64,000 nucleotides of DNA, taken from positions 62,001-126,000 of the forward strand of contig MCFE01000141.1 of assembly GCA_002104905.1 (NCBI GenBank), read 5' to 3'. This stretch comes from Basidiobolus meristosporus CBS 931.73. Lineage: Eukaryota; Fungi; Basidiobolomycota. The notes below the pieces were generated by a model, which was given only the letters and a program-made list of their open reading frames with translations, was not told where the DNA came from and searched no databases. The position numbers and the translations under genes are program-made. Positions within the stretch are counted from its first letter, which is position 1. Each line of letters opens with the position of its first letter. Positions 40,295 to 64,000 of this stretch are shown piece after piece.

Positions 40295-41414
40295 ACATCT
40301 ACAATCAATATGACCACAAGCAAGGATTCTCAGACATAGTATCACCACACAATAGGCATGTCCTTTGGACAACTTTGATATACTTTCATGTTCTGAGTAC
40401 CAGATACTTTAGTAAAGTATTCACTGTGCATACTAACAAAGAATGAGGTCCCAGTATTTTATGGTTTAAAAGCTATGACCTAAGTGACAACAATAATGAA
40501 GCATCTACATGTAGTGACAACAGCTAGGAATAGTTTATATTAGTACCAGGAAGTAGTGAACGAAGATTGAGTTTTTGAACTGGTGGCTCCAGTATTACGA
40601 ACTAAATCTCAGGTTAATATTCTATAAACCAGCCAGAAGCTTATAGAACCCCAAGATATACGGATAATTTCGGTGTAAACTAAATAGTTACTGCCGACTC
40701 TGGTGTCCGAACCTGACTATTTTCGGATCAAGTTCACTGCTGGGATTCACTTGAATTATTCTTGCTCCGAGAGAGTTCGAAATATCACAACTCTTCGCCA
40801 TTTAGATCAAGGGTCCAAGTGGTTTATGATCGATAAGTCTATACCACTCTTCCTTCCAAAAATCCCAAATAGTTCCATGTTGGGGGAAGTTTGAAGATGG
40901 GCATGATATGCACCTGCCGATTTCCAACACCTCTAGAAGAGCTTCAAGCTGACGCCACATATCTTTCAAGAATGGGCCTAGGATAGGGATGGCTTGGCGA
41001 CCACCAAGTCTTGGCCAATTCTTTCAATTAGCCAATATTCTAGGAACCAAGTCTTCTATCGACAATCCACAATCTAGCAATCAGTCGAGCGGAAACTTCG
41101 AGCATACGAATAGCGCAAACTGAATAATCTCAACCATTTCAATCCATAGCTTCCTTGGGGGGGGGGTCCGTATACTCTGCCTCAGTTATGGAAGGTGACA
41201 CAACATAGGTTGATTCATTGATTGTCAGGAAATCGTCGCACCATAATAAAGGATGACCATCCAGCTCTTGAGCCAATTGGTGGTTACCCAGAACACTCCA
41301 CCCACCGCCACCACTAGTCCCAAGTCTGTTCTCTGGCTGGGGCCCAAATCCGCAGGAATAGGGATAAGAAACCTGGCTGGCTTGGGATCGAAACGGATGG
41401 CGCCATCGTCACTG

Positions 41415-41555
41415 CTACAAGCACAATAGCCAGGTGGGATTTTTGGCCAGCCACTGGAACGGTTCAAATTCAGGCTCAGGCTCAGGCTCAGACTCGGCAG
41501 GGGGCACAGCCGCAGCACTGGGTGTTAGGATCGAGATCAGGATCCGGGATATCAT
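41415..41555 (-). CDS. Possible 46-aa small secreted peptide precursor (MISRILISILTPSAAAVPPAESEPEPEPEFEPFQWLAKNPTWLLCL)
   Basis: ATG at 41555, TAG at 41415-41417; hydrophobic N-terminus and X-Pro/X-Ala spacer. Below the ORF-track cut-off; may be chance. Confidence 0.25.
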   Translation of the reverse strand: MISRILISILTPSAAAVPPAESEPEPEPEFEPFQWLAKNPTWLLCL

Positions 41556-42364
41556 GAGAGGGATATACTCCGAAGGGATCCATCAACCCCAACTTACTAC
41601 AGTCAAATGGGCTCGAACCGGATAGGACTCAATCAAGCACCCACCTCCTTCGAAGGGCCAGCTAGGTGGACCAGATGGGAACCATACGAAACCGATGGTG
41701 TGGGTCACCTGGTGGCAACCCCACCACCCACACCAATCGACATCTGCAGAGTGAGCTTGGCGCATTTGCCCAAGCATCCTACCCGATCCCAATGATATCA
41801 TGTCCAAGGACACCAAGTGTGGTCACAAGCCAACATGGATATGGGTTTGCTCGACCTAGTCCGCTGGCCAAGCTAGCCAAATGGCGAATTTCTCGACGAA
41901 CCGATGGATCCGTCCAAATCGTGACTACGGGGTGTTTCGAATCCCCAGGTGAGCTCCGGGAAGCTCCGTCTTCGCCATCCCAGCGAACCCACCTCACGGT
42001 GTGCCGGTGCGAAGGATTCGGATTAGTCAGCAGTGGATGGTGTGAGGAATCGGATTGGTGGGGTCAACCACGGGATTTTATTAGGTTCTTTGGACATCTC
42101 CACTGAGAAATTTTATGCAAAGTAGTGGCAGAACGAATAGAAAAAAATATACAAAAGAAACAGGCCCCTCGCGGACGAAGCGGACTGATTACTGATATGA
42201 GCCGGGGATTTTGGTGGGCGTGGGGTGCTACGGGCATCCCCAGTTGATAAAAAAGCGATCGCCAGGATTATTCGGATTTCGTTTGCGTGGAGTCGGCATC
42301 TTTCTGGGTGAAGTTAGGAAGATGCTCGCCTTTCGACAGGAACAGGCTTCTTAACCAAACGATC

Positions 42365-43060
42365 TTAAGTAGGGGAAGGAAGGATCGGATGAGTACGCTG
42401 TGATAGGTGTAGATAGGCAGACGCCATCGGGTTAGTACTTACTTCATTCTCCAGCATTTTCACCTTATCCAGGGAGTTCTGCTTTTCCAGACGCACCTGA
42501 TGGAGCTCGTTTTGAAGGGCGGACATTTGTTGTGCGAATGGGTTCTCCTGCTCCAACTCCTTAACCCTCTGCTCCAACAACTGGCACTTCTCCAACGCCT
42601 CCTTCTCCCGCTGCTTTCTACGGTCGCGGAATCTGGCCGAAGCTGTAGCGTTTCTACGTCTCTTCTCGTCCAGGATTTTCCCAGCATGTTCCTCGTACGA
42701 CGAAAGCCCGCTGGAGGCAGGATATGGCTGATACCGTGTGGTGGTGGTTGTGGGAGGAGTGGTGCTTTCGGGGGAGTATGGGTGTACACCTCTTGACGGG
42801 ACGACGGCGGTGGAAACCACAGGGGCGGGAATGGCTTTTGGCAGTATCGAGACGTGCTTTCCATTGATCTCGGGGGAGTTTTTGGTGAATGGGTGGGGAA
42901 TGGAAGCAGTGGTGACCAGTGGGTTGGTGGTTTCCGGTATGGTGGAGTATGTCACAGGCACATGAGGGTTGCTGGTGTATGTGTAGGCGGGAGTGGGCTC
43001 CTCGGGGGAGCCAGAGATAAGCGAAGTAAGCGGAGGGAGTTTGAGGTGAGTCGAGTACAT
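42365..43060 (-). CDS. bZIP transcription factor, Cys-3/MetR/Met28-like basic region; probable 45-nt intron at 42398-42442
   Basis: DEKRRRNATASARFRDRRKQREKEALEKCQLLEQRVKELEQ followed by heptad leucines; Pro/Ser/Thr-rich N-terminus; GTAAGT...CACAG near the 3' end. Confidence 0.92.
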   Translation of the reverse strand: MYSTHLKLPPLTSLISGSPEEPTPAYTYTSNPHVPVTYSTIPETTNPLVTTASIPHPFTKNSPEINGKHVSILPKAIPAPVVSTAVVPSRGVHPYSPESTTPPTTTTTRYQPYPASSGLSSYEEHAGKILDEKRRRNATASARFRDRRKQREKEALEKCQLLEQRVKELEQENPFAQQMSALQNELHQVRLEKQNSLDKVKMLENEVSTNPMASAYLHLSQRTHPILPSPT

Positions 43061-44842
43061 CGTTAGTGTATCTAGGTGGAGTGGACGACTACGAGGTACT
43101 CTGGGATCAAGAAATCAGCTAAATTAGATGAATGTTGAAAAATACAGAAAAAATTGATCTCTGACTCTCTCGCATTGGGGGGAACCTTGAATCATTTATA
43201 GATGCTGGTGTGAAGGGTGATATTGGCGCAAAATGGCGCGATTTCCATGAGCTTTGTTCATTGGATGTCAGCTATATATGTGACACAGACCCAACGAGAT
43301 CTTGCTAAAAGAGGATGCTCAAGCCTATGCAATCGAGATCATACTCTCAAGTGGATATCGGCAAAAGATGGGATTTCGGCGCTGGGGTGGTGTTCACCAC
43401 GGTGATTGGCGGTGCTTCCTGGCTTCCCATCGGCCTGAGCAGCGAGCAGATGAACGGCTCAGCCAATGGGCGGCTAAGGAGGGCAAATCCATTGCTTGGT
43501 AATTTTTAGATAAGCCGAAGGCCTCGCAAGCAGAGTAAGTGATATGCAGCAGCACCCGGTTTTGCAAAACTCGTCAAAAGGTATAATAATCACCCAAAAT
43601 GGAGCAATCGCAGTGCTGTAGTCCATGCAAAGATTGGTGTTTCACTCGCGGATGATTAGTAATTGTGGATCTTGCTCCGTGGCATTTCCATTGGGATCCG
43701 CTCTCCTTGATTTATCATGGCATCTGTATTGTTCCTTCTGATGCAAGAGAAGGACGTCACGCACTTGATTGAATGTTACTCCGTATTGACGCTTTTGCAA
43801 GAGAAATTGCGCAATCGGGGATTTGGATCTCATTGGCTGTCGATGCTGGGTGTACTACGGACACTTCTTCCATTGTTGGTCACAGAAATGACCAATTTGT
43901 TGATATCATTTCGATGGCATTTCCGACCAATCAGTGACCTTCCAGGAAATGACGCACAAAGTTAGCTTTTAGGCTATTGATTTTCCGTGAGTAAAATCTC
44001 CAAGATCCAACCATAGCTTCGGATCCGATTGCAGGAGCACTTGCACGTGTCAAGTCTATAAACCGACTAGGCCATGGCTGGGATGGTTCACAAAGCAACC
44101 GTGAGGTGTGCGGTGGGAGTGAAGGCTGGTATGGCCAGTGGGCCGTAAGCAAGTTGGGGGGGGGAGCGAATCGTGCCGAGAGCAATGAGTGGTACGGTGC
44201 GTATGGGCGCCGTCAGTACTGAATCGTACCAGGCGTAGGCTCACGCCACGCCCGAGGCATATGAAATTGCATCGAAGGTTTGCAAAAGACAGGAGAAGAT
44301 TTCTCATCATGATGCACCATGATGTGCAATAATCAGTGAACTCATCAACGCCAATGGCCCATAGAGAAGGCCCCCATCGGGTTTGTTTTGAGGCTATGTT
44401 AGATATGTGAACCCCTGCCTCGCATAAACCTTGGCCTGTCTTCCACCGACACAGGGTGATGGCAACAATCAGCACAAGCTGAGACTCGTTGCTAGCCACT
44501 CCACTTGTATATACTGTTTGGATCGGCCTTCAGATACATGTGCAGAAACAGTTCAGCCCTTTGATAAGATGCAACATCAGCTAGAAAGGCCCCAGTCCAA
44601 TTGAGTGCAGTAGTTACCAAACAATCCAGATGGATGAATGGCAGGGCCTGTTTGTTCGTGATTGGGCATGGAATTCGGAACTTACTCATTCTTTTATGCT
44701 GGTTGAATCTTCCTGCCACTATTCATTATTTACTCACCTACAATTGGTTACTCCATTGTGAGTGGCTCCTTCACCCATTCATTGTCAAGTCACACGCCAT
44801 TACACCAGACACGTTGTCTATGCCTTTTCCCTGAGGCACGCC

Positions 44843-44974
44843 TATTAAATATCGCAGCGGTCCCCAAAATCCCCATCTCCAATTCACTGCTGTGGATTAA
44901 TTTCGCGCCCTTGTCAGCCCTCTGTCGACTCATTCCCTCCCCTCCTCTCTCTCTCTCTCCTCTCCTTCCCTCCT
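44843..44974 (+). promoter_or_regulatory. Core promoter of the FAM72-like gene (TATA-like TATTAAATA plus CT-rich tract)
   Basis: TATTAAATA at 44843-44851; pure pyrimidine run at 44933-44974; ATG 85 nt downstream. Confidence 0.55.
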
Positions 44975-45058
44975 GCTGTGCCACACGTAGATCGATATCG
45001 ATTGGTCGCATAGTCATCCAAAGTCAAATTCTCGTCGAGCGTCCAAAGAGCTGCCAGC

Positions 45059-45704
45059 ATGGTTTCCATATTGGTCCCGGAACGGTTTTCCACGCGTGTG
45101 CTACGTCTCCGATGCCGTCATTGCCATTCGATGTTTACCGAGCGTGGTATGAAGGTAAGCGTTTCTGTTCCAATCCTTGGGAGCCCACACTCACCGGACT
45201 CCACCCATACCATGGAAGGCTAAGCTTGTCGCCCAACCGGGCACTTTTCGTTACTCCACTGACGTGCAGCCGTATAACTGCGCATTGATCTCCTCCGGCC
45301 ACAACGAGAGCACATCCAACATACTGAACAAGGCGTGTGCATGCTTTGCCCAAGAGGTCGGATGCTTAGGATGGTAGGGCTAGCGCGTGCTTGATCTATG
45401 TCGAGAGATGGGGGCCCTAACTATCACCCAGTGGAAATGTTGTAGGCTATTACGTGGTTCATCCTTGCTCCACGTGCAATACGCGAAATACCAATGGCCA
45501 CCTATGGGTCTTCTATTTGGAGAATATCCACGAGATGTTTCGGTTGCGAGCAGATGGTAACTTGCTCAGAACCAGTCGACAACCCTCACCTTCACCTCCA
45601 CTCATCCATTTGTTTGTTTTCAAGGCAAGGATTACATACACTGGCACCAATTGGGGGACGAAACCGCTTCTGAGGGCCTTAATTCCGAAGACGCCATCCG
45701 CTGA
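45059..45704 (+). CDS. FAM72: FAM72 family protein, 151 aa, 4 exons (45059-45154, 45219-45373, 45432-45556, 45625-45704)
   Basis: Spliced product MVSILVPERFSTRVLRLRCRHCHSMFTERGMK-AKLVAQPGTFRYSTDVQP...ACACFAQEVGCLGCGNVVGYYVVHPCSTCNTRNTNGHLWVF...RLRADGKDYIHWHQL...SEDAIR follows the FAM72 pattern throughout (CxxC...RGMKA, FSTD, CxC, CLxCGNxVGYxVxxPCxxC, NNGHxWxF, terminal IR). Three GT-AG introns of 64, 58 and 68 nt with compatible phases. Confidence 0.92.
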
Positions 45705-46454
45705 CTCCGATCGGCCTATCCCGCACCTGATCTGACCAATCGGCCGTATGGAAGCCAGATCTGTACTTCAAATATGTAGAATACTTATCCCCCTCCTGCC
45801 CATAAATCCTAACCTGCCAACTGTCACTCTTTGTGGTGTTCTGGTCCACCTAGCTGTTGGCCAACCCTCATATCTAGATAAGCCTCCATCAAAGATGTAC
45901 TTGGGTAAATGTAAAATAGAAGCTCTCTTCATAGCCACCAGGACTTGACACACGATTTGTTGTTTGACCAAAGCCATCATTTGGACTCGGCCTTGAGCAG
46001 TGAGCACCACAAGTCCCACATACATATCAAGTCCAGCCTCACAGAGCATTCACTTCTCTATTGGATTAGGGAATTTGCCACTTGCCACTTGCACCCTAGG
46101 ACACTATCCAGAGATGAGATTGAGGCTGGTCTGTTTCATGGGGCTCAGCTCATGATTTCCATCCCAATTGAAGAATCCAGAATAATCATGTTTGTGGGAG
46201 AATTGTCAATGTGCCATTGGGTTTTTTCCTTGTGCTGTATAGAGTGGGGATGATCCAGGTGGAGTGACAGCAATACAGTATAAGTGGGTTGGCACGGGTG
46301 ATGGTGTGGATCTCCACATGCATGGGGACTCACAACAGCACACTGCCATCAGCAGAAACCACCAAAAATTCAACTCGAAGAAAATGACAACTAGGATGGA
46401 GGATCCATACAATATGTGCTGAATCCGATTAGTATGGGCATGGTTCCCTAAATA

Positions 46455-47078
46455 TTGCTCCAATCCCACCACACGTCCACCCCACCCACCGAGGTCGTTC
46501 TAGATGCTGCAGCATCGACCACCGCTTTTACCACGACCAAACCATTGCCCATACACGAGCAAGTGCAAATCCATGGTGACAAATTTCCTAAACTGCATCC
46601 ATTTTCACCGATTTGCTCGTGGTGGGTGCCGCGAGGCCTAGGATGCCCCTTGGCATTGCCAATCCCCGTCGATCGATCCTCCAGGTGGGATGATCCCTCA
46701 TGTTGGGAGTTGACGCAGTACAATCGGATCCTCCTCCTTCCATCCTTTCACCCATCTGCGCGAACGCCGCTCCCTGGGTATCTCAAGGTTGACCAAGCCT
46801 ACCGCGCACCCATTGGTATGCCATCCGTATTGCCTCATCCTCTCCCATCATCCAGATACCAGGCACGCCCAGCTCATCGGATCACCAAGGTCACTTCCAA
46901 CAGCCATGTGATTCTTCGTGGGACAGCGCTGGTTTCCGGAAAACCCTGGGAGAATGTTCATGGTTGTTTAGTAGCGGTGCCAGATTCAACCACAAAAATC
47001 CCCCAGGAAAAGGCCGCTGATTGGCCCATACGAGATGCAGTACCACCAGGGATCGTAGCGCCAGTGCTTGATCGGTAG
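46455..47078 (+). CDS. Hypothetical 207-codon ORF (TTG start), unrecognised
   Basis: Only its length and its position in the CpG-normal island support it; no motif, no upstream ATG. Confidence 0.2.
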   Translation: MLQSHHTSTPPTEVVLDAAASTTAFTTTKPLPIHEQVQIHGDKFPKLHPFSPICSWWVPRGLGCPLALPIPVDRSSRWDDPSCWELTQYNRILLLPSFHPSARTPLPGYLKVDQAYRAPIGMPSVLPHPLPSSRYQARPAHRITKVTSNSHVILRGTALVSGKPWENVHGCLVAVPDSTTKIPQEKAADWPIRDAVPPGIVAPVLDR

Positions 47079-48361
47079 AATAGATGGGTTGTCGAGATAA
47101 AGGCCAACATTTCGATGTCCAAAAGCGGGATTCTGCCTACTCTGCCACTGGAAAAAGAAGCCCCCTAAGCACGAGTCATGCGATGGATTCATTTGACTGC
47201 TGCGCTCTGGTTACACCTCACCAATCGAGGGCGGCCATGAGTATGAGGAGCCGTATATGGGAATCCACTGTGGGATACCATGATGGCAGCTGATTCAGTG
47301 CAATTAGCCGCCGCGCCCGATACGTCTTTGTGGCAGGTGAGGGTGATTTGTTTTCTGGTATTCAGGTGGGCGCATTCTTCCAGGGAATGTAAGGCAAACT
47401 TGGTTGAGGGGGGGTGCGCGGATTACCCAGAAAGTAGGTCCGCTGATCACAGGAGCTGGCCCCTCTTCATCAAGCCCCTGATCTCCATCCACTGGATCAA
47501 AGACGCTGGGTAACAGAGGGTATATTCCGTGCAGAGCAAAAGCATCTGTTTCAGCGAACTGGTGGTGACCTTGCCAAATATGACTCAGCGGGCAGTGAGA
47601 TCGGGAATGGGAATGTAATGCTTGGGGGGATGCCATGGTCCTGATTTTGCAGGATGGTTGATTGTGTCCACCCACTCATGCTCTCACACATAGCAAGAGC
47701 CTTGGTTTCAAGAACCGGATATACTGCCAGACATCTAGCTGGAGGTTGCTACGCTGTAGAGCTCGCCGCGTAGGGGAAGCCCGTAGCAGGAGGTCCCTGC
47801 CCTTGAATACCACTAGAGCATGCAGTATGACCTAGCGATGCAGCATACATCAGCACCTCATGTGAGTCCCTTGTTTCGCCCCCTGGGATGAAAAAACAAA
47901 TTGGTTTCCCAATTGCCCTGCCGCCCAGTACTCACGCGGGCCATTTTCTGGATATGGGTGCCCCCATGCCATCCCGCAGCTGGATTTGGCCGAGCCGAAG
48001 TTCCATTTGTCTTTGTGTCTCCTCGCGCCATGATCCCCCGGTTGGCAATCAATCGACAGGGCGTGATTTCCAGGGTTTCTAGGATTCAACATCGGTTGTT
48101 TATTTACAAACATGCTTATTCAACGAGGCAATGATTGTTCTTACTAAATGGTCAACATCATTGTGATGTAAGATATCGCAAATGAGAGTGGGGATCAACC
48201 TTGTCACTTGGCTGGCAAATCATCTCTCGCGCATGCGATTGATCAGTAGGCTCAGTCCCGTTTGGCCGAGATGGATTAGAATTATCGGGGTGGTCACTCT
48301 GGACATCAGGTAGAAATACAGTTATTTTACATCAGGCTTGGCAAGCCCTCGGAGGATACCG

Positions 48362-49198
48362 CTAATTCGCAGTATCCCAGGTACTAAAGTGGTGGGAGAG
48401 TAGGGAGGGTCTGTTGGCAGTGTAGAAATCGTCGCGTCGCGGGAGGTAGTAACGCTGCTTTAACGGGCGTAGAATCTTGTTGGCCTTGATCATACTGGAC
48501 TCGGCGAGGCTGATTCGCAGATATTCCTGGTTAGAGCGGATGTTCCGTGGCCCCGATAGGCGAGGTGGAAGGAGCTCCTCAAAATCGTACTTCCGCTCCT
48601 TGATTCGGCTCGAGGGATCGGTGGATGGGCAGATGCCGTAGCTGTCCGGGGTTTCGTAGTTGCCCGCAAATCCCTGGCAGTGCGGGCCTTTCCCATGCCG
48701 ACATAACAGTTCGTTGGTGTATTTGATAAAGAGTGCTTTGGTGGGGTGAACCATCGCTACGAGCGTTTCCCGAGCTCGTTTCAATATCGTATCTGGTCGA
48801 GGCTCTCGTCGGTTGACCCCAGGGCATGCGTCAAGTGGGTTGGCGGACAGGGTTACACACAAGATGTTGGAGACGCCATCATCTTTGATGGGTAGCTCCG
48901 TGTAGGAGAATGGACATACGGAAACGGTTCCATGGAGGGCAGCCTCGTTCGAAAAGTCCGGGTGCTGTCCACCTAGGCTGGTCGAATTAGATATGTATAC
49001 AGGGGAGTTCAGCTTGCTCCAGCACTCGGAAGATACCGTCAGCACGGGTAGCACTGGGGAGGCTTTGGCGCTGATGGAGTCTCGAAATATGGTGGGTTGG
49101 GGGGTGACTTTGGGCGGGGTGGATCTACGCTGCTTTTTGGATTTACTAGCGCTACTACTTTGATTCTTCGACTTGAGGAACAAACGACCGCGGTCCAT
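48362..49198 (-). CDS. Hypothetical protein, 278 aa, intronless; basic Ser-rich N-terminus and a compact basic C-terminal motif
   Basis: ATG start, long open frame, TATAAATA 73 nt upstream, CT-rich leader; C-terminal RNIRSNQEYLRISLAESSMIKANKILRPLKQRYYLPRRDD. Confidence 0.85.
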   Translation of the reverse strand: MDRGRLFLKSKNQSSSASKSKKQRRSTPPKVTPQPTIFRDSISAKASPVLPVLTVSSECWSKLNSPVYISNSTSLGGQHPDFSNEAALHGTVSVCPFSYTELPIKDDGVSNILCVTLSANPLDACPGVNRREPRPDTILKRARETLVAMVHPTKALFIKYTNELLCRHGKGPHCQGFAGNYETPDSYGICPSTDPSSRIKERKYDFEELLPPRLSGPRNIRSNQEYLRISLAESSMIKANKILRPLKQRYYLPRRDDFYTANRPSLLSHHFSTWDTAN

Positions 49199-49270
49199 GA
49201 TGTACTAGGCGGAGAGGATAGGAGGTGGTGAGGTGTGGGAGAATTTCTGTCCATGGCAGGGCTGTGGCTA

Positions 49271-49278
49271 TATTTATA
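49271..49278 (-). promoter_or_regulatory. TATA box of the 48362-49198 gene
   Basis: Minus strand TATAAATA, followed by a CT-rich leader and the ATG at 49198. Confidence 0.6.
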
Positions 49279-51803
49279 TGCGCAGACCAGGCCTGATTTC
49301 GCTTCTCACGAACTATTATTTACCTATCTTGTAGGGACCCACTCATGCCTGGTGAGCCCATTGGCTGGCTTATATTACATTCAATTGAATCGTGATGGTT
49401 AATGTTGGGAGGATTGAATTGAATTCTTAAATAGGCGTACGATAAGGGTGTGCGTTTCGGGTCCGGCTTTTCTTCAGAGGGCAGCTTCGATCAGATATAT
49501 TAGTCGATGTGTACTCTATATGTGCCCATGGATGTCACCAACAGATTTGGTGAAGCTGCATGGTGGTGGTAACCACTTGAACCCTCGATAGCACAACATG
49601 AAGTGTCTGGCAACCCGTATCAGTGAGCGCTTGGAATCGCCGACAATAGGCTGGTGTATGGGCTGTGTACCGTCATGACCCATATGGCACCACTGCTCCA
49701 ACATCAACAGACATGCTCCAAATATCCAGGGTCCACAAGAATCCGATATCCCGTCTGGTGCTATGTGTATTTCCCGAACTGATAGGGTCTGAGGTGTTTC
49801 ATTGTGTTGCGCGTGTTTCCTGATTATGTGATCACAGATCCCGGGGATCGCTCAGCTTCTATCTGCTGTTTCAAAGCGGTGTTCAGCAACAGCCATTAGG
49901 AGCAGCTGACACGGTGGGTGCTGCCCACTGAAGATATATGTGAGATACATCCTGCATGAAGATGCTCATTCAATTTTCAGACCTTCGCTTCACACCACGG
50001 ATGCCGATGCGTGGTGTTCCAGATCAGTTTGAGCATAAGCTCGGAGCTCAAGCATCGATGAGTTTATCTCGCATCGACAGATCACAAAAGCTTATTCTGC
50101 ATGAGTCGTGTAGCCACCAAGCCAGCATACCTCACAAACACCTCTGACCTATCCTAGTGGAGTAGCTGAGCACCGCTGGTGTTGTCCGCCTTCCCTTGTG
50201 ATGCGTTACGTCATGGGAATCTCCCTCCAGCTAATCCTATTGCGTCGTGGCAAGTGAACAGCAACCAGGCATCGGTTGTTTGGCTAGTCAACTGGTATGT
50301 TGACTAAGAGTCACCACAGAGAACAATCCCATGGAGGTAGACCGACGCTGTGCTCCAGTCAGATCGGGTTCTCACACCTCCATTCCATTCTCAGGGTTGA
50401 TAAGCATTCAATTGCAACATTAACCAAGCATATTCGCACCCACAGCATATGGATTCCTGCTGCATACCCATCCAATTTGAAATCAAGCAGCCAGATGTCA
50501 GTCATTTGCGTAATATGTTCTCAGCATAGTCAGGTGCTCGTATCCAGATCCCGCATCCATTCCCTTCATGCCTTATCGTTAGCACGGGCAAACAGTGTGG
50601 ATGCTGCAGAAGCTGGGGGCAGATGTAAACCTCGCTTGTTGCCAAGTTTCAAGCCATGTCAGGTGATGCTCCGCTCTACTGAATGGGATGCATCGGAGAT
50701 TTCTTCCATGAGTTCTGAACGAACCCTGACTGACTTGAAACCGAGCCACATCGTAAGCCCGTCATCGATCCTCTGCGCTGCGCGACCTTCTGGTCTAGCC
50801 CGAGAACTAGCTCAACAGTAAGTTTGGGTTTGCACGCTATCTTGCATCCAGAACTCCGGAATATCTCGTAACCCTATTCCCAGGGTGACAATCGAGTGGT
50901 CATGTGGTCAACCAGATTCCCTATTCAAAACCCCAGTTTGAATCATTCAGTGGATCAATAAACAGAGAGAATAAAGGGTGTTCAGGATCGTTTTCTATCC
51001 ACAGTTGATAGAGGAATGTGAAACGGTGCCTACACCAATTGACACGAGTCTCTAGCTATCTGGGCTGCGATACCGTCTAACTCTTCGGGATCCTATTATC
51101 AGCGCGCTGCAAAGGCTTCATCTGTATCTGGTGTAGCACTTCCCGCCGCAAATGCTGGATAGGTTTCTAGTAGAGAAACAGAGGTTTCAGTCCGAATTCC
51201 CTCCTTCGTGTGCTGAACAACCATCTTTAGAATAGCTGAGCTTGTTTGTATGCAATATTGGCCCATTCGAGGGTTTCGTGGAGTTCTCCACTGGTCCAGA
51301 ACGAGGATGGCTTTAATGTCAACAGATGAGCTGGCTGTTGTGCCCCATCACATTGGCGAAGTCAGTGCTAACAGGATAAAGATAAACAGCTGTCCCTGGC
51401 AAAGCTTGATTTTCGTAAATATCTCAAACCAGCTCAAGGGAGTAAGGGGCGACTATATTTAACTGCAAATTCGGTTGGCTACTCTTGGATGCTGCTGACG
51501 TCCGACCCGGCATTTGATAGAGAACTGACGGCGAGACTCGGTTACGAAACAAGCATACCAGCCATCGCGTATCTAAACAACTTTATTGTATGGTTCTGTG
51601 AACACAGCTAGATCTGAGCAGCTGATAAATCGAGAGGCTGCTCAACAAGCACTTCTACGAACAGCACCGATCACCCAATTAACAATACATTAATGATTCC
51701 ATCTGTGAGTGTTTGCGGGAATTACTGGTCTGTAGAACTGCTAGAGCAAAACAGGCTGGCTCTGGGGAACTGCGGAGATTCTATCGGTGCGAGCTGAAGG
51801 ATA

Positions 51804-53031
51804 TCAGGGGGAAAGCCCTTCAGAGTTCAATTGCCTCATGTTGGCTTCTGTCACTGTCACCCCTTCCATTCTCGCCCAGTCCTGGCTGTTACTCCCTGGG
51901 ACTTCTACCTTCCTGGCTATCGGACGAGGTATTCTTGGTGAGAAAGGCTTGTGACACTCAGGTGAGCCTAGCTGAGGGTAATACTGTCTATAGGAGAAGT
52001 AGGCACAGCAGATTCCTGGCATGATGGGGTAAGTAGGGTCATGATGATGGCTAGGAGGTTTAGGAGTGCATACCAATAAGCGCACCTACTGTCACATCCT
52101 GCCAATGATGACGATAGTCGCATATTCTTGACACGCCTATCAAAGCCGCACCGACCATTGGCCCGATTGAAACGAAGCTTTTATATGTGTGACCTCTTTC
52201 GTCGAACAGGTGCAGTTTTCCGGCCAGGAAGCATGAGAGAAAAGTCAAACCTGCGAAGCTTACTGAAACAAGAGAATTAGATGAAGAGTTAGTTAGACAC
52301 CTGAAGTACGCACTCACAGGAGGTGTGGCCGCTTGGGAAGCTTTTCATCCCGTCGGTAAACACATACGCGTTCGTTTGAGTGCACACGTCGACAGAGGTT
52401 AATCCCAACGGCGGGTCTTTTGGCTCTTGCCCATTCTCCAGCATAGGCTGACAGCGCGAGATGAAATCAGGACGGTGTCTGCCGACGGTAACCTGAGAGG
52501 CGTATGAATAGTGAGCAAATGGAGCTATATGAGTGATAGTAACGCTTGCTAACCTTGAGCACATGTGTTATCATTAATGTTAGGGTCATGGCCAAGCACA
52601 ATCCTAAAATGACAGATTAACGGGGGTTCCATCACAATAAACGGGCTTTCCTCACCAAGCATTGAATTGTGGCAGTCGTAAGGACTTCTTCGAATCAGCA
52701 GCGAGACAAGTGCCATCAGAATGAGCGGGAGGACAAAGACTAGGACCTGTGGATGGGCCCTGGTTAGTAACCAGCTCGAAGCAAAATCAGGAGCAAAGGG
52801 AACCCTTCTTACAGCAGCCAAGCTCATCGGAATGGTGTCATACTGCTTGTGTGGAAAGCTTATTGACTTGTTGTCGAGAGAAAACAGGCGGTGGAACGGG
52901 GGGATTTTGTCCACCAAGAAAAACCCCAAGGCAAGAAGCCCGACGATCACCCAATCGACAAAGTATGACAAAATCAGGGTCTTCAGATGGCCCGGAGGAT
53001 AATCATTCTTGAAAATTGGATTTTTAGCCAT
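51804..53031 (-). CDS. PAP2 family lipid phosphate phosphatase (DPP1/LPP1-like), 311 aa, 6 exons (53031-52813, 52746-52656, 52603-52554, 52492-52318, 52262-52074, 52015-51804)
   Basis: All three PAP2 motifs assemble on splicing: KVTVGRHRPDF, SFPSGHTS, SRICDYRHHWQDV. Five GT-AG introns of 66, 52, 61, 55 and 58 nt with compatible phases; hydrophobic segments. Confidence 0.95.
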
Positions 53032-54133
53032 CGCAAGAAGGGTAAGGAGAGAGGCGACAAGAGCGCTTGTGCTGCATGGGACATATTTAAGTGGCGGCGT
53101 AGGGAGTGGCCAATGTGTAGATCTATTGATGAAGCAATTTGTCTCAGGCATCGGGCTGTTTAACTCCTTCATGAAATGGCCAAACAAATATGCCGAGTAG
53201 GACAGGCCACATCATAGCCTATTGATTACTGGAGACCATTCATAGTCGCCGGGAATGTGGATGGGATTTGTAGAGGCTCTCCTGCATCATGAAATCAGTT
53301 GTTTGAATCGTGCAGCACCTAATCAACTATAAGGCACCAGTGATGGCTTGAAGCCTAATGCTGAGATGACTAGCCAACCATTTTTGGCTTAAGCGGAGGT
53401 GGGGATGATTGGCCACTAAGCTGGATAGACGAATAAACACCATAGCCAATCATCTCCATCAATTTGCTTATCCAGGGCAGCTCCGCATTCATGGCAGCAA
53501 CCAGCCTTGCTTTCAACAGAAATATTGCCAACAATCCGCCGTTCAATGGATGGCCCTGCGTCTTGACAGGAGCGCATGATCGGACTAATGAGGCTACCCC
53601 CAGCACTATGCCCCAATGTTGCTATCCTGCGATCGTCTCCTTGCCACTGGCAGCTACAACCCACACCTTGAAACAGGAAGCAGCCTCCGCCCAAAGGTAC
53701 AGATGCCCGGTTGCCATACAGACATTGGCCCATGTCTATAGTTAGCCTGGCCCCACACAAGCGCCTATCAAATGATGAGACATCGGCCATCCCGACACTC
53801 AATCTGTTAAATTTACCCAGCAAGAGCCTAACTCAAGCCGCTTACTGCGGTGGATTTGGACTATGTCCTTATTTGGAAGCTATGGCTAAATACATCGATG
53901 GTTGATCAGAAGCTGGGCAGTTAAGGGAAAACGGTGCATGTAGTTTGATTGATCCTACCCAATGGAATTTGATTGGATATCATGGGGGTTGGTTAGGCTT
54001 GCTTTGTGGGCCCTTGTTGAGTGCAATGGCTACCGAACGATTGGCCATCTCTATCCTTGTTTATGCTGGTGTGCTCTCGGTGGCTCTTTAAATTGTGCAG
54101 GGTTACGAGAAACAATATTCACAGCCCGAAAGT

Positions 54134-55056
54134 ATGACAGTTATCCCCACTGTAGAGAGAAATCGGACCAAGAGAAAGGTGGTCTACGTCCCTCAAATGG
54201 ATGAGTTCTATAACCAGTGGTCAGAAGTGTGTTAACTATGCCTTCAGTTCGACTTACTCGATGCCATTTACTAACCAAAGCATCGCTTCTCCAGGTGTAT
54301 GATAATGATGGAAACGTCCTTCAACAGCTAGATGACTATCGCTTCAAATACACCTTGCCTAGGCTGATGGAAGAAATGGCTCTTAGTTCTTCTAAGAAAA
54401 AGATTCGCATTTTGGATTTTGGGTGTGGAACTGGTAGAAATCTTACAAGTTTCATGGGAATGCAGAAAGACATCCCCGGTTCAACATTTGCCAACCAAGG
54501 TGGACTCTGGACCGAGGTTGAGCTGGTGGCGATGGACATTTCTCAAGGCATGATGTCTAAAGCTCAAGCGAAAATAGCCGAGCTAAACTCACTTCCTAGC
54601 CGGCCTGACTGCAACTGTCACCTATCCTTTACCTGGCTGCTTTATGATATATTGTCGCAGCTTCCTGTTCCACCGATGGCCAAAAACATTGACATCATAT
54701 ATAGCACTCTTGTCCTGGAACATTTGCCCGAGCCTTGTCACTTTTTCAAATTCGCCAGACAATGCATCAACCCAGAGACCGGAAAGCTGTATATCTCCAA
54801 TATGCATCCAGATATGGGAGAAGGTACAAGTGCTGGCTACTACAATACTGATACGGGTGAGAAGGTCGTGGGATATTCTGCCAATCATCCGATTGAAAAC
54901 TTGATAGAGTTAGCCGAAGAGCACGGTTTCAAACTTTTAGAGAGGATTGAAGATGAGGTGAGAGATGCTGACCACGTGGGGCAATTGGGCCACAGAGCAC
55001 AGAAGTGGATTGGTGTTAGATTGTTGGTCATGCTGGTTTTCGGGATTGGTAAATAA
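54134..55056 (+). CDS. Class I SAM-dependent methyltransferase, 284 aa, 2 exons (54134-54226, 54295-55056)
   Basis: Motif I ILDFGCGTG, LVAMDISQGMM, DIIYSTLVLEH, GKLYISNMHP; 68-nt intron GTGTGT...TACTAAC...CCAG joins FYNQWSE to VYDNDGNVLQQLDD. Confidence 0.92.
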
Positions 55057-55769
55057 GCTGTCTTGATGCAAAGTTTACATATCAACTATCAATTAAAATA
55101 TTAAGCCCTAAATAATTTCCTAGTTGCTGGCCGCCGTTGATAGAATCCATGATTTAGTAATTGGTCTAGATATTCGCCAATTGTTTGAGTTAGCCCCGAA
55201 AATTAGCAATGCTTTCAAACTCGTCTAAATATGCTTGGGGTTTGCAACATTCTGTGATCTTTTTTGGCAGACTCCTGCTAAAAACTCAGTAAATCTCATC
55301 TAAAAAGAGTGCAATTTTTGCTGTCTACCTTGTAAATCCACAAAATCTAGCCCTACATGTTGTAAATTTTGTAGTTACATAACAAAATTTCTGTGAGAAA
55401 ATCCAAGCATGGATTTCATTTAGTATTTTACTGGTATCTCTCAGTCTATTCTTCATGTGTGAGTATCTCTGAGGCTGGTTACCATATTTGGCATGAGAAT
55501 TACTCAGGCACAATCCCTTTGAGGATATATGGCTACTTGTCCCCAAGGTGGTTAGGATGTCAGATAGTGAAGGCAGACACTTTAGAGAAAATTGGATTTC
55601 CAATGATACTGTGCTAGGTGTGGCAATTTTTCCATATGGTGTACAGTTAGAGCTTGTGCTTGGATAAAACACAATATGCTGTCAAAGTTTTGGAGATATT
55701 GGAAGTGATTGGGAGAACAAGTAGATTATGTGGTTTCCCTTAATGATTAATTGCATATTATAGTAATAT

Positions 55770-57262
55770 ATTATAAAAGTTTATATTTCCATCTAAATAT
55801 TCACTCTACTTAGTTACTTAGATCATTACCTACAAATCTTAGAGAATCCTCACCAAATTCCTTGCTGGGATTTACTTAGAATATTCTTGCCAAAATATCA
55901 TGTACCCAAAATATGAAAGTTCTCATAGTGGTCCAAACAGCCCCAAACCTTACCCACATGCTCTTGGGATGTTCCCAAGCCTATCTTACATGCTTTTATG
56001 CCAAGACCATGCAAAAGTACAAGTACCACTTTTACATTCAATCAGTCATTGAGTGAAACCCATATAATCTACTTGTTCTCACAATCACCTCTAGTATTTT
56101 CAAGACTATTACAACAGGTTATGAGTCCCAAGCTGTTACACCCTGCAATGTCAAATACCGCAATCACTGAATTTTCTCCCTCTGCAGTAAGTTGGATGGA
56201 TCTAACTACCAGGTATGGAAGGTGAAGATGAAGATACTGCTACAAGAAAGAGACCTTTGGGACATTATTATGGGAGATGAATGCCCTCCTAAAGATGTAG
56301 GTGAGGAAGCCTTCAAGTCTTGGAAGAGCAATCAAAGTGCCTTTAACTGCACTTGCCTTATTGTTAGAGACAAAATGTTAATTCAATGCTCATGAGCAAA
56401 AATGTCAAAGAATACCTGGAAGGTACCAGAAGAAGCCTACCAGCCATGTTCAGCTGCCAAGAAAATGTATTGTAGCCAAAGATGCTTTACTACAAAGATG
56501 CTGCCAGGAGAATAAAAGAAAAATCCAATTAATAGAATTGCCCTGCTTGTGGATGAGATGGAATCTGTGGGCACACCAACTACTGGCAAAGATGTGATAG
56601 TTACCATCCTGAATAGCCCAAGAGACAAGTTCCAGGGCATTGTATCAGCCCTAGAGTCCAGAATTGAAGATTTGACCTTAAATTACATATATGGAAGGCT
56701 CCTGGATGAATTGAGTATCACAGAATCTTTATAAGTTTATTGATTTTCATCATATCTGGAGGCCAACATAAGTCCCTATAAAATGTAATAGTAACCTATT
56801 TTGCAGCTATTCCAAAAGGAAAGGACACACATCAGACTGGTGCATCAAAAAGAGAGATAGTAAGCAGAAAAGGCCTGAATATTGAATTGCTGCAACAGCA
56901 GAAAATAGAATATTCATATCTGCACTGAATATGACCACAAACAAAGTTTCTTCAACATGGTATATTTACTCTGGAGCATTGCAACACTTTACATAACTAA
57001 AAGAATTTTTTACTCAATATCAAGAAATTTCATTCAAGAAGGTTTTCAATGGCGACAATGGAACACATGATACAGTGTGAGAAGGAACTATCCAAGTAAA
57101 CCTTACTAGCAGTGAAGGAAGCTGTATACTGACCTTCAAAGAAATACACTATATGCCAGAAATAGCCCAGAACCTCTATCTGTAAGCAAGGCCACAGCAG
57201 AAGGACTTGTTGTTAGCTTTGAAAATCTTGGATGCAGGATCACTGATCAAAATGGCTCCCAT
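55770..57262 (+). mobile_element. Decayed Copia-A element 6 (LTR to 56116, PBS 56117-56128, gag-PR relic); a minus-strand LTR fragment precedes it at ~55678-55760
   Basis: ORFs 55998-56225, 56192-56395, 56549-56734 match Copia-A gag; TTACAACA-GGTTATGAGTCC junction. Confidence 0.85.
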
Positions 57263-59070
57263 TGTTGTAAGAATTTGTAATTCCACCTAAATATTCACCT
57301 AAATTAGTCACTTAGATCATTACCTTCAAATCCTAGAGAATACGGACCAAACTCCCTATTGTAATATACTTAGAATATATTCACCAAAATACCAGGTGCC
57401 CAGATAATAAAAATTCTCAAAGTTGTCCAAACAGCCCCAAACTTTGCACACATGCTCTTGGTACCTTCCTTAGTCTATTCTATAAGCTAGTAGTGCCAAG
57501 ACCATGTAAAAGTAGAAATACTACTTTTACATTCAATAAATCATCAATTTATAGCTATATAATCTACCTGTTCTCCCAATCACTGCCAATATCTCCAAGA
57601 CTCTTACAGCATTCTACATGCATTCTATGCCAGGATCATATCAAAGTAGAATTATTTCTTATTCATTCATTGAATTATTAAGTGAAGACCTTATAAAATA
57701 CTTATTCTCCCAATCATGTTTAATACCTCCAAGTCTCTTACAACAGGTTATGACCCCCAAGCTGTCACTTGCTGCTATGTCTTCCACTGCTATTACTGTA
57801 ATTTTTCCCTTTGCTGAAAAGATGGACAGATCTAACTCCCAAGTGTGGAAGGTGAAGATGAAGATGCTGCTACAAAAAAGAGGCCTCTAAGATATTGTCA
57901 TGGGACAAGAATGCCCTCCTAAATATGTAGGATAGAAAGCCTCAAAGTAATAGTAGAGAGAACAAAGTGCCTAAAACTGCATATGCCTTAATGTTAAAGA
58001 CAAATTGCTAATTCAATGCTCAAGAGCAATAGCAGCAAAGAATGCCTGAAAGGCATTAGAAGAAGTATACTAGTCATGCCCAGCTACCAAGAAGATGTAT
58101 CTTAGACAAATATTTTCTACTACAAAGATGCTGCCAGGTTAGGAAATTAAAAATCTAATTAACAGAATCACACTGTTTGTCAATGAGATGAAATCTATGA
58201 GCATACCAACTACTGATGAGGATGAGATATTTACCATCCTGAATAGCCCAAGAGACAAGTTCCAGGGTATTGTATCCGCCCTAGAGTACAGAATTGAAGA
58301 TTTGACCTTATATTATGTATATGGAAGGCTCCTGGATGAATTGAGTATCACAGAATATTTACAAGTTTACTGATTTTTTATCATATCTGGAGGCCAACAT
58401 AAGTAGCTTAAGTGAAGAAACACCAATGCTTTGGTACTGGAGATTTGGACACACCAACTATGATTATCAGCGCAAGATGATCAAAGATCAGTTAATATCT
58501 GTAGTCAAAATTGATTCCCCAGCTAATTTGGAGCACTGTGAAGCCTATATATAAGGGAAGCAAGCCAGACAATTGCTTAAGAGCTCTGAGCTAATTGAAA
58601 CAAAGAAACAATAAGATATAATACATTTAGTTCTGTGTGGACCTTTAAAATAATTATCCTGAGGTGGGATGAGGTATGTAGTGAATTTATTGTTGATCAT
58701 ACAAGACACATGTGGGTCAACTTCCTGAAAAGAAACAAAGAAGCTCTGTCTAAGCTCAGGGAGCTTAAATCCTGGGTGGAAGAGAAACTAGTGAAAAATC
58801 AAGAAAATTTACACTGATAATGGTGGAGAATATACTTAAAGACACTTCATGCACTTCTGCAGAATTCATGGGATATAGCAAGAGACTACTGTACCAGACT
58901 CCTTACAGCAACATGGAGTATCAGAATGTACAAACAGATCAATAACTGACATGGCAAGACCTATTATCTTTAATCAGATAATAATCCTAAGATTCTGGGC
59001 AGAATCATTTGCTATAGCTATTTATCTCAAAGATAGGAGCTATAGCAGAGTACTTTGCTATTATATTTCA
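57263..59070 (+). mobile_element. Copia-A LTR 57263-57611, partial LTR 57612-57745, PBS 57746-57757, then gag joined by deletion to pre-integrase/integrase relic (element 7)
   Basis: TGTTGTAA...TTACAGCA; ORFs 57618-57890 and 58188-58373; integrase-like DNGGEY near 58815-58832. Confidence 0.85.
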
Positions 59071-59099
59071 TTTGAGAGATTTAAATCCACCACTCAATA

Positions 59100-60546
59100 A
59101 GCACTTCTGCTGCAACACTCTATATCCACAACTTTGGCAGGAACTCTAAGGCTCTATGCCATTGCTCATTCACTGGTTCCTATACATTCTAGTCTTCAGT
59201 CAGCACTGTAATGTCTAGCTCCTCATCTGCCAGTTTTTGCAACAAGTCCTTGTATTATTCAAGTGCATTTTCTTGAGTACTGCTCCTGAAGAAGTGCTGC
59301 AACCTCTTGGTGTGCCTATTAACGTTCCAAAATTTCACCAAAGGCATTGTGATAACCTTTTGAGTTCTTGACATTGTTACTTTGTCTGTCAGTGGGATCT
59401 CCACTTTGTTAACATTGGAGGATGTGGAGGCTGTGGTAGACAAATTGCCTTTCTCTGCAAACTCATCTACCTTGCTGGAGTGTAGCTCAACTGGCAGCAC
59501 TTCCAACTCTTGTGAAAACAGCTGTTTTTTTGTTGGTAATTCTTCTTGGCTATGATGCAATTCAGTCTGTTTGGGGCTTATGGTGTTCATTGGCAAGACC
59601 AGCAGCTTTTTCTCATACTTCCCTGTCTCTGGCTTGGGTAGATTTTTTCCCCTTTACTCTTTCCTTTATCACTGCCAGGTCTTCCACTGCTACTTTGTCA
59701 GAGTGCTTCTTGCATTGAACTGCATTTTCTGCGTGATATATACTGCTCTGATGCATCTGTTCTGGTTTACTTGTCCCTTGCTGGCACCCTGCTGGCAACC
59801 TACACTTCTTTCCTGCTTGTTTGAAGTTCTCAGTCCATGCTATGATGGGCTCCTGAGGTAGCTGCTTGTTTTTATCACTGCCAGGTCCATCACTACTACT
59901 TTGACTGAGTGCTTCCTGAGTAGAACTATCCTTTTTCTTTGGTAAATGCTGTGCTGGTGCATCCATGTCTGCCTGCTTTTCCCTTATTGGCACACACATA
60001 CCTATTGATCTTTGGCTTTAGTATATACACTGCATTTTCTCCCTCCAATGCTGTGATAGGTTTTTCTGTGGGCATTGTCTCTGGGCACTGTTGTTGTGCT
60101 TCAAAAACTGTGTAATGTTCCTTTGCTGTTACATTGGGAAGTGGCTCAATTCTTGGCTATGACATTCAGCTACTTGAGTTTCTTCTTTGCAGCAAAGACA
60201 CTGCTTTCTCTACCTGGGATATTGATTGCTCTACACCTTTTGTCTGCTCATCCTGTTTATGGACTATTTCTGGATTTCTTTGGGCCATTGCATCTATTGT
60301 ATCAGCCACTGCACCTAATTGCCTCATTAATGCTTTGGTATAAGCTGACAACATACTTGATAATACAGGTGGTGGTGATGTTAAGATGACCACTTGCCGG
60401 TCCTCAACTAAAGGCACTGCATTTGCTACATTCTCATCAGCCTCAACAATATGGTTAGCTAGCAGCTCTGCAGAGATTCTCAGTTGCCTTCTTGACTGAG
60501 AGCCTGAGGAGTCTGCATTATTACCATAAGTGGGCGCACTTTCCAC
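59100..60546 (-). pseudogene. Decayed accessory ORF divergent from the CACTA transposase (coiled-coil then low-complexity repeats)
   Basis: ORFs 60166-60546, 59613-59999 and 59255-59596 lie in series; homologous to 14100-15210. Confidence 0.5.
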
Positions 60547-60868
60547 AGGGCCTTTTTTTGGTGGTAGCCCTACTTATTGCACTGAATGCCAAAGCAAGCT
60601 GTTGTCCAGCTGCTCTTCTACTGCTGTCAATTGCAGGGTTTGGTTAGGAACTAGACAACTTTGCTTTATTTCTAGGAGGCATATATATGGAAGTGGGCCA
60701 AACCAAAGGGGAAATGGTGTTACATATTCATGTGTGTGTGGTGAAACAGCTTTTTTTATAATGCTTACTATGGCAGGTGATCACTGAATCTTACATTCAT
60801 GTATGTTCAATGTTGCAAATACAAGACTGTCTTAAACTCACATGAGTATTGACAAAAACATGGTATAA

Positions 60869-63560: not shown

Positions 63561-63615
63561 TTATATGCAGAATACCCAAGGTAGTAGTGGGTGAGCAAAT
63601 ACAGAGGGGTGATTC

Positions 63616-64000
63616 TGTTGTAAAAATTTGTAGTTCCACCTAAATATTCACCTAACTTAGTCACTTGGATCATTATCTTCAAATCCTAGAGAATACTGAC
63701 CAAATTCCTTGTTGGGATTTACTTACAATATTTTCACCAAAATACCAGATGCCCAGAATATGAAAATTCTCAAAGTTGTCCAAACAGCCCTAAACTTTGC
63801 ACACATGCTCTTGGGACCTTCCTTGACCTATTCAATCTGTTTGTAATGCCAAGACCATGTAAAAGTACAAACACTACTTTTACATTCAATAAATCATTAA
63901 GTGAAAAACTACATAATCTACTTGTCCTCCCAATCACTTCCAATATCTCCAAGACTCTCACAACAGGTTATGAGCCCCAATTTGTCACTCTCTGAGATGT
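63616..64000 (+). mobile_element. 5' LTR (63616-63965) and PBS (63966-63977) of a further Copia-A element running off the window
   Basis: TGTTGTAAAA...CTCTCACAACA-GGTTATGAGCCC. Confidence 0.92.

Follow-up and report, generated by a model that had tools for sequence, protein, structure and literature searches.

The window, a 64,000-nucleotide stretch of Basidiobolus meristosporus DNA, contains a gene of the FAM72 family at positions 45059-45704 (+). Positions 44900-45800 are identical, base by base, to scaffold MCFE01000141.1 of strain CBS 931.73 (GCA_002104905.1). The gene was correctly spotted in a preliminary description of this DNA; it is an ordinary member of a known family and is already deposited. 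Our preferred reading, to which we give a probability of roughly 70%, is that the encoded protein is a substrate receptor of the CTLH-muskelin type, with an altered pocket, and that the repeats in the window decay independently of it. More telling than the tryptophan highlighted in the preliminary description are the eight zinc-ligand cysteines, the tyrosine that binds the acetyl group and the arginine at the C-terminus. By analogy with human FAM72A, all of these point to a receptor for the CTLH-muskelin ubiquitin ligase.

Structure of the gene and its counterparts in Basidiobolus

Read from the sequence, the gene has four exons, with a combined length of 456 nt, equivalent to 151 codons and a TGA stop. 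Its parts, together with two codons discussed below, are as follows.

45059-45154 (+): exon 1; 32 codons, with the first CxxC zinc-finger pair (C19, C22) and the RGMK motif
45155-45218 (+): intron 1; 64 nt, GTAAG...AG, with a junction matched by the public protein K493DRAFT_151732
45219-45373 (+): exon 2; 51 codons and 2 nt, encoding the YSTD motif, the CAC of the CxC zinc knuckle and one Cys, the first, of the second CxxC
45374-45431 (+): intron 2; 58 nt, GT...AG, interrupting the codon TG/T for the fourth zinc-finger cysteine
45432-45556 (+): exon 3; 1 nt, 41 codons and 1 nt, with GYYVVHPCSTC...NGHLW
45557-45624 (+): intron 3; 68 nt, GTAAC...AG, absent from the public gene model
45625-45704 (+): exon 4; 2 nt, 25 codons and TGA, with KDYIHWHQL, an acidic tail and the terminal -AIR
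45642-45644 (+): TGG codon of W132, the counterpart of human FAM72A W125
45699-45701 (+): CGC codon of the C-terminal residue, Arg151, the counterpart of the human FAM72A arginine that enters the muskelin Kelch channel

Downstream of an in-frame stop, the ATG of exon 1 (45059) is the earliest start codon, and all three introns are GT-AG. Exon 3 supplies the Tyr that binds the acetyl group, the zinc ligands of PCxxC and the NGH loop.

The gene had been described as hidden. This was mistaken, since the same B. meristosporus gene is already public, in GenBank, as 'hypothetical protein K493DRAFT_151732, partial' (120 aa, PF14976), and is only truncated there. The public protein corresponds to exons 1-3 from residue 7, is identical over this length, and includes both of the split junction codons. 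It is without residues 1-6 and without exon 4. Hence, the public model has neither the tryptophan nor the terminal arginine. We note that the reading frame of exon 3 continues through intron 3 (ORF 45454-45735, +), such that an unspliced transcript would yield a 93-codon alternative tail. The C-terminus resulting from retention of the intron is different, and has no Trp and no terminal Arg. This open frame may explain why the automated gene model ended there. The practical gain of our analysis is therefore a repaired gene model, in which the start, the last exon, the conserved Trp and the terminal Arg are restored.

An orthologue is present in Basidiobolus ranarum. This protein, K7432_013552, is 153 aa long, is named 'Protein FAM72A' in UniRef, shares 80% identity and has a precomputed PF14976 match. 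Exon 1 aligns with its residues 1-32, beginning MVCIMIPERF, with 24/32 identities (75%). Exon 4 matches its C-terminus (...NGRDYIHWDQL...VIR; BLASTP E=3e-7). Alignment of the two loci places all three introns at positions common to both species. At the DNA level, exons 1-3 are 70-75% identical with 0 gaps, and the introns are 46-53% identical with gaps (46% for intron 1). The acidic tail encoded by exon 4 is conserved poorly, with 50% DNA identity. Coding substitutions between the two species number 27, 26 and 94 at codon positions 1, 2 and 3, respectively. Because the intron positions are those of the orthologue, the exons are free of gaps and the substitutions are dominated by third positions, we regard 45059-45704 (+), on this comparison of sequences, as an intact gene under purifying selection. 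The four-exon, 151-codon model of the preliminary description thus stands, on the strength of its GT-AG introns, the public partial protein and the B. ranarum orthologue with the same introns.

The codon-position substitution pattern also led us to reject pseudogene status. We give almost no credence to the wider idea that this is a decaying or non-functional copy, in which the spliced reading is fortuitous. It could draw on the partial nature of the public model, and on the existence of a second paralogue, but conflicts with the intact 151-codon frame, the canonical splice sites and the intact orthologue with the same introns. Equally, it conflicts with the excess of third-position substitutions (94, versus 26-27 elsewhere) and with the lack of indels in the exons.

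B. meristosporus has at least two FAM72-family (PF14976, YPEH2ZP) genes. The second paralogue is K493DRAFT_310157, with K7432_011533 as its B. ranarum counterpart. These share the family, and the W-containing class, of the window copy and end in -INR. The public K493DRAFT_310157 model looks N-terminally truncated, being 120 aa long compared to 153 aa for K7432_011533.

Family membership and a putative muskelin-type receptor

The Pfam entry PF14976, formerly FAM72, is now called 'YPEH2ZP, Yippee homolog 2 zinc finger protein'. We searched the exons singly, and used the public proteins K493DRAFT_151732 and K7432_013552 as stand-ins for the joined protein. Exon 3 alone matched PF14976 with E=4.1e-10 and 40.4 bits, above the cut-off of 27, across profile positions 74-112 of 145. 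This bears out the FAM72 assignment made earlier. The match of exon 1 was weak (E=0.087) but collinear, at profile positions 8-27. Exons 2 and 4 had no Pfam match when searched singly, because they are too short or too low in information, and were instead assigned their places with the help of an in-house profile and the orthologue. The in-house profile, built from nine full-length members, was matched in order by exons 1, 2 and 3, at positions 4-31, 32-74 (E=1e-11 for exon 2) and 77-115.

An exhaustive phmmer search with K7432_013552 recovered 534 cluster representatives at E<=1e-3. The named members that we sampled come from birds, horseshoe crabs, chytrids (Spizellomyces, Batrachochytrium) and Neocallimastix. 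Others are from Mucoromycota (Cokeromyces, Cunninghamella, Mortierella), Kickxellomycotina (Smittium) and Basidiomycota (Phakopsora, Pterulicium). Several of the sampled animal and fungal members already carry the label 'Protein FAM72'. Our literature search returned no paper mentioning FAM72 together with fungi. Muskelin occurs in opisthokonts only, many fungi among them (PMC3797097). This limit is paralleled by the sampled named FAM72 members, which are from animals and fungi only.

Roughly half of the representatives of PF14976 are Dikarya-type proteins of greater length, which have an 'RFVFH..ERHY' motif and are without the W-containing last segment. In these longer proteins (P0009, P0020, P0022, P0024, P0026 and others) Arg or Thr occurs at F101, L93 and L69. 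Most of them still have Arg as the last residue, frequently preceded by Gly or Asp (-GR, -DR). The two with named members, P0009 and P0020, are from Basidiomycota.

The human mechanism was taken from four sources (PMC13676621, bioRxiv 2026.09.19.752822, PMC11364545 and bioRxiv 2026.01.14.698769). Note that the residue roles used here come from the text of the papers, and not from a comparison of structures. Human FAM72A is a Yippee/CULT beta-tent, with a zinc finger that sits on the discoidin domain of muskelin. Inside the protein runs a tunnel that receives the acetylated Met1-Ile2-Gly3 of UNG2 and has a second zinc knuckle (C65, C67) in its lining. Within the tunnel, Y83 hydrogen-bonds the acetyl group, while N97 and N98 organise the pocket (PMC13676621, bioRxiv 2026.09.19.752822). 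The C-terminal arginine enters the muskelin Kelch channel and drives affinity (PMC13676621). At the zinc tip, L75 and N79 contact muskelin. For alignments, the vertebrate reference was a bird FAM72A (P0120), offset by +2 from the human numbering of the papers; 22 of the 34 residues named in the papers match the bird protein at this offset.

All 8 of the 8 zinc-ligand cysteines are conserved in the window protein. The four cysteines of the zinc finger (human C18, C21, C74 and C77) are found as CRHC, in exon 1, and CLGC, across the junction of exons 2 and 3. Their columns hold Cys in 150-151 of 151 family representatives. The second zinc site is also kept, with CAC (human C65, C67) encoded by exon 2 and PCSTC by exon 3; its 4 columns are invariant (151/151). 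Also conserved are Y83, A32, S44, P88, N98 and W102, as well as the zinc-tip residues L75 and N79. The window protein ends in -AIR, and a terminal Arg is present in 123 of the 151 representatives (81%).

Among known proteins, vertebrate FAM72A, which serves the CTLH-MKLN1 E3 ligase as a substrate adaptor for UNG2, is one of the closest. Both proteins belong to PF14976, and are of similar length (151 aa here, 149-151 aa in vertebrates). Both have the CxxC...CxxC finger, the CxC plus PCxxC knuckle and the acetyl-bonding Tyr. They also have in common N98, W102, the W125 position and an -IR end (-CIR in human, -AIR here). Exons 1-3 each share 33-44% identity with the bird protein, and exon 4 shares 24%. 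The window protein differs by a 7-residue insertion before the zinc knuckle.

The fold was assessed using an AF2 model of K7432_013552, the 80%-identical orthologue, and not of the window protein itself. This model has a pLDDT of 83 and a pTM of 0.76. Its best Foldseek matches are Mis18 Yippee, YPEL5 bound to the CTLH receptor WDR26, and cereblon (probability 1.00, target-normalised TM 0.6-0.7). Hence, the Yippee/CULT-type beta-tent is shown as a predicted fold, for the orthologue. PDB sequence searches with exon 3, K7432_013552 and bird FAM72A returned no FAM72 chain.

Do the fold matches call for a different function? Mis18, YPEL5 and cereblon are structural neighbours of the orthologue model, and the window protein might, like them, be a Yippee-fold protein that works without muskelin, for example with a small ligand or another partner. 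A pocket that is atypical for its class, described below, would suit such a role. We consider this unlikely. While YPEL5, Mis18 and the cereblon CULT domain match the fold, their Pfam families differ, and the window protein matches PF14976. According to the FAM72A structure papers, YPEL5 is without the second zinc knuckle present in FAM72, and the aromatic cage that canonical CULT domains (cereblon, for one) possess is missing from FAM72A. Furthermore, the terminal Arg and the muskelin-contacting residues of the zinc tip, including L75 and N79, are kept. A terminal Arg in 81% of representatives is hard to explain without a reader of the C-terminus.

We infer the partner and the client of the window protein purely by homology. 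If the human structures are a guide, the C-terminal Arg of the receptor would plug the Kelch channel of a muskelin orthologue, and the tip of the zinc finger would rest on the discoidin domain of the same partner. A client would then be held in the internal tunnel by its N-terminus, and a CTLH/GID-type E3 ligase would ubiquitylate it. The CTLH-muskelin-FAM72 degron pathway has so far been studied in vertebrates only. Since the terminal Arg is kept across the family, in ~80% of representatives and including many fungal phyla, this conservation suggests that the pathway is much older than antibody diversification. This point rests on public data and is not special to the window locus. Fungi are not known to have an antibody-diversification context like that in which vertebrate FAM72A acts.

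The conserved tryptophan and an atypical pocket

The preliminary description drew attention to W132, as the equivalent of human W125, and took its retention as a sign of a link to UNG. The alignment itself is sound. The W132 segment, RLRADGKDYIHWHQL, aligns without gaps to the bird FAM72A segment RLDPSGVNVLLWGNL, and so W132 and W125 are confirmed as equivalents. The meaning attached to it is not supported. Trp is found in 76 of the 77 representatives whose segment aligns at this column, and the Dikarya-type half of the family is without the segment. Hence, the retained W132 carries nothing specific. Judged from the alignment, it is a class-wide invariant of the animal and early-fungal class, and does not discriminate. 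In human FAM72A, the W125R/A mutants are defective in UNG2 binding (bioRxiv 2020.12.22.424012). However, W125R also abolishes binding to MKLN1 and to all CTLH subunits (PMC11364545). The cryo-EM structure predicts no direct contact between W125 and MKLN1, and the authors of that work invoke a long-range conformational effect (PMC11364545).

Residues of the pocket for Ac-Met1, [ILV]2 and Gly3 that are kept in the window protein are Y83, A32, S44, P88, N98 and V85. F8 is probably kept too, being present in a MAFFT alignment and one residue off in hmmalign. The changes are V33K, L42R, L69A, L93N, N97T, F101L and M103V. The first five of these are rare in the W-containing class, as listed here.

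Human V33: K in the window protein; Ile or Val in 59/76 W-class representatives
Human L42: R in the window protein; Leu in 69/76 W-class representatives
Human L69: A in the window protein; Ile in 55/76 W-class representatives
Human L93: N in the window protein; Leu or Met in 70/76 W-class representatives
Human N97: T in the window protein; Asn in 58/76 W-class representatives

Within the W-containing class, the Basidiobolus orthologue pair is, so far as aligned sequences can tell, an outlier at these five pocket positions. The second paralogue has the class-typical Leu at the L42 position, and the window copy has the more divergent pocket of the two. Human L42 is part of the cavity wall around degron residue 2, and binding by human FAM72A is substantially impaired by the N97A change. 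Since five tunnel or cavity positions depart from the class norm, the human Ac-Met-[Ile/Leu/Val]-Gly degron is probably not read unchanged. The substitutions argue for a specificity that is altered or lost, rather than for a conserved UNG2-type degron. Note that they could mean peptide binding that is lost and not changed.

These observations bear on the idea that the window protein regulates the turnover of cellular UNG, and so tunes base excision repair in general, with no connection to repeats. UNG2 is the best-established client of FAM72A, and the window protein keeps the Tyr for the acetyl group as well as N98, A32 and S44. We nevertheless consider this decidedly improbable. Recognition needs the first three residues of an N-terminus that is specific to vertebrate UNG2, and human FAM72A has further clients with the same degron. 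In addition, L42R and V33K alter positions in the cavity wall around degron residue 2 or in contact with the peptide backbone. We found no evidence that UNG is a client of the window protein. UNG may be an ancestral client of the FAM72 family.

A more detailed scenario can be drawn, in which a FAM72-muskelin module, anchored by the terminal Arg and reading N-termini through its tunnel, was inherited from the opisthokont ancestor and duplicated in Basidiobolus. The window copy, with Arg and Lys in the cavity that in humans receives degron residue 2, would then read a different N-terminal degron, in which the second residue is perhaps acidic. Taken as a whole, we think this scenario quite unlikely.

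Decay of the flanking repeats at CpG

The gene lies in a repeat-free island, at ~41-54 kb of the window, with a GC content of ~50%. The repeat blocks on either side have 37-40% GC. The boundaries are sharp, with repeats at 1-40500 and 54500-64000 and the island at 41000-54000. In the preliminary description these were 'C-to-T-riddled repeats', in which FAM72, by lowering UNG, would allow deaminated cytosines to be fixed as C-to-T changes. Hence, the gene would be a FAM72-UNG arm of a RIP-like defence. Both the spectrum of changes in the repeats and the properties of the protein bear on this proposal.

The spectrum was derived from 45 pairwise alignments of repeats within the window, each 400 bp or more in length and with 75% identity or higher. 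These contain 3722 transitions and 2776 transversions, a Ts/Tv ratio of 1.34. C/T differences affect 88% of CpG sites, compared to 16-19% of CpA, CpC and CpT sites. Consistent with this, the observed/expected ratio for CpG is 0.07-0.09 in the repeats and 0.69 in the gene island. An excess of TpG and CpA complements the loss of CpG in the repeats, and TpA is not in excess (TA observed/expected 0.80-0.83). Two families, of six copies each, were polarised using their consensus. Outside CpG, the rate of C>T was 0.069-0.078 per site, against 0.036-0.061 for T>C. No dinucleotide preference was seen among the three non-CpG contexts in these two six-copy families.

The excess of C/T differences at CpG, together with the depletion of CpG, indicates decay of methylated CpG, of the 5mC type. 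The compositional boundaries similarly indicate long-standing CpG methylation that is confined to the repeats. From these patterns, the AT-rich repeats next to the gene look like the product of CpG-specific, 5mC-type deamination, independent of the FAM72 gene. The phrase 'C-to-T-riddled' was thus an overstatement. Depletion of CpG is evident, while the general GC-to-AT bias is only mild.

Repeat-induced point mutation was considered as a source of these changes. Repeats subject to Neurospora-type RIP are AT-rich, as are those in the window. However, RIP has a preference for CpA-to-TpA changes, which we did not find, and the Ts/Tv ratio here is only 1.3. We rejected RIP on the basis of the Ts/Tv of 1.34, the lack of a CpA preference, the lack of a TpA excess and the specificity of the loss for CpG.

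A role for FAM72 in fixing these C-to-T changes, through reduced UNG, is therefore very improbable. The proposal gains from membership of the family, from the kept W125 equivalent and from the slightly higher rate of C>T than of T>C that two repeat families show outside CpG. Against it, differences are concentrated at CpG (88%, versus 16-19% elsewhere) with no CpA preference and a Ts/Tv of 1.34. Moreover, deamination of 5mC generates a T:G mismatch, which is not a substrate for UNG. The Trp is class-wide, and the W125R mutant also fails to bind MKLN1, which W125 is predicted not to touch directly. In UNG2, human FAM72A recognises nothing beyond the acetylated Met-Ile-Gly start, a sequence specific to that protein, and five pocket positions differ here. 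The FAM72 family is, furthermore, spread across many fungal phyla. The preliminary description had itself set beforehand, as a reason to abandon the proposal, that repeat mutations be confined to CpG. Essentially, this is what we found, since CpG is the only context in the window repeats with a strong, specific C/T excess. We conclude that a link between the FAM72 gene and genome defence has no support in the window sequence, and that the preferred reading, of a muskelin-type receptor beside independently decaying repeats, accounts for the locus best.

Among neighbouring ORFs of the gene island, we found none with a DNA-repair function; the only matches were to a class I methyltransferase and, weakly, to bZIP. 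The former, at 54217-55056 (+), lies at the island edge. It is a 279-aa ORF for a class I SAM-dependent methyltransferase (Methyltransf_23, E=3e-12), with no match to a DNA-methyltransferase family. The latter, at 42365-43060 (-), is a 231-aa ORF that is a gene in the public annotation, and its bZIP_2 match is sub-threshold (E=0.0013, 19.2 bits versus 22.3).
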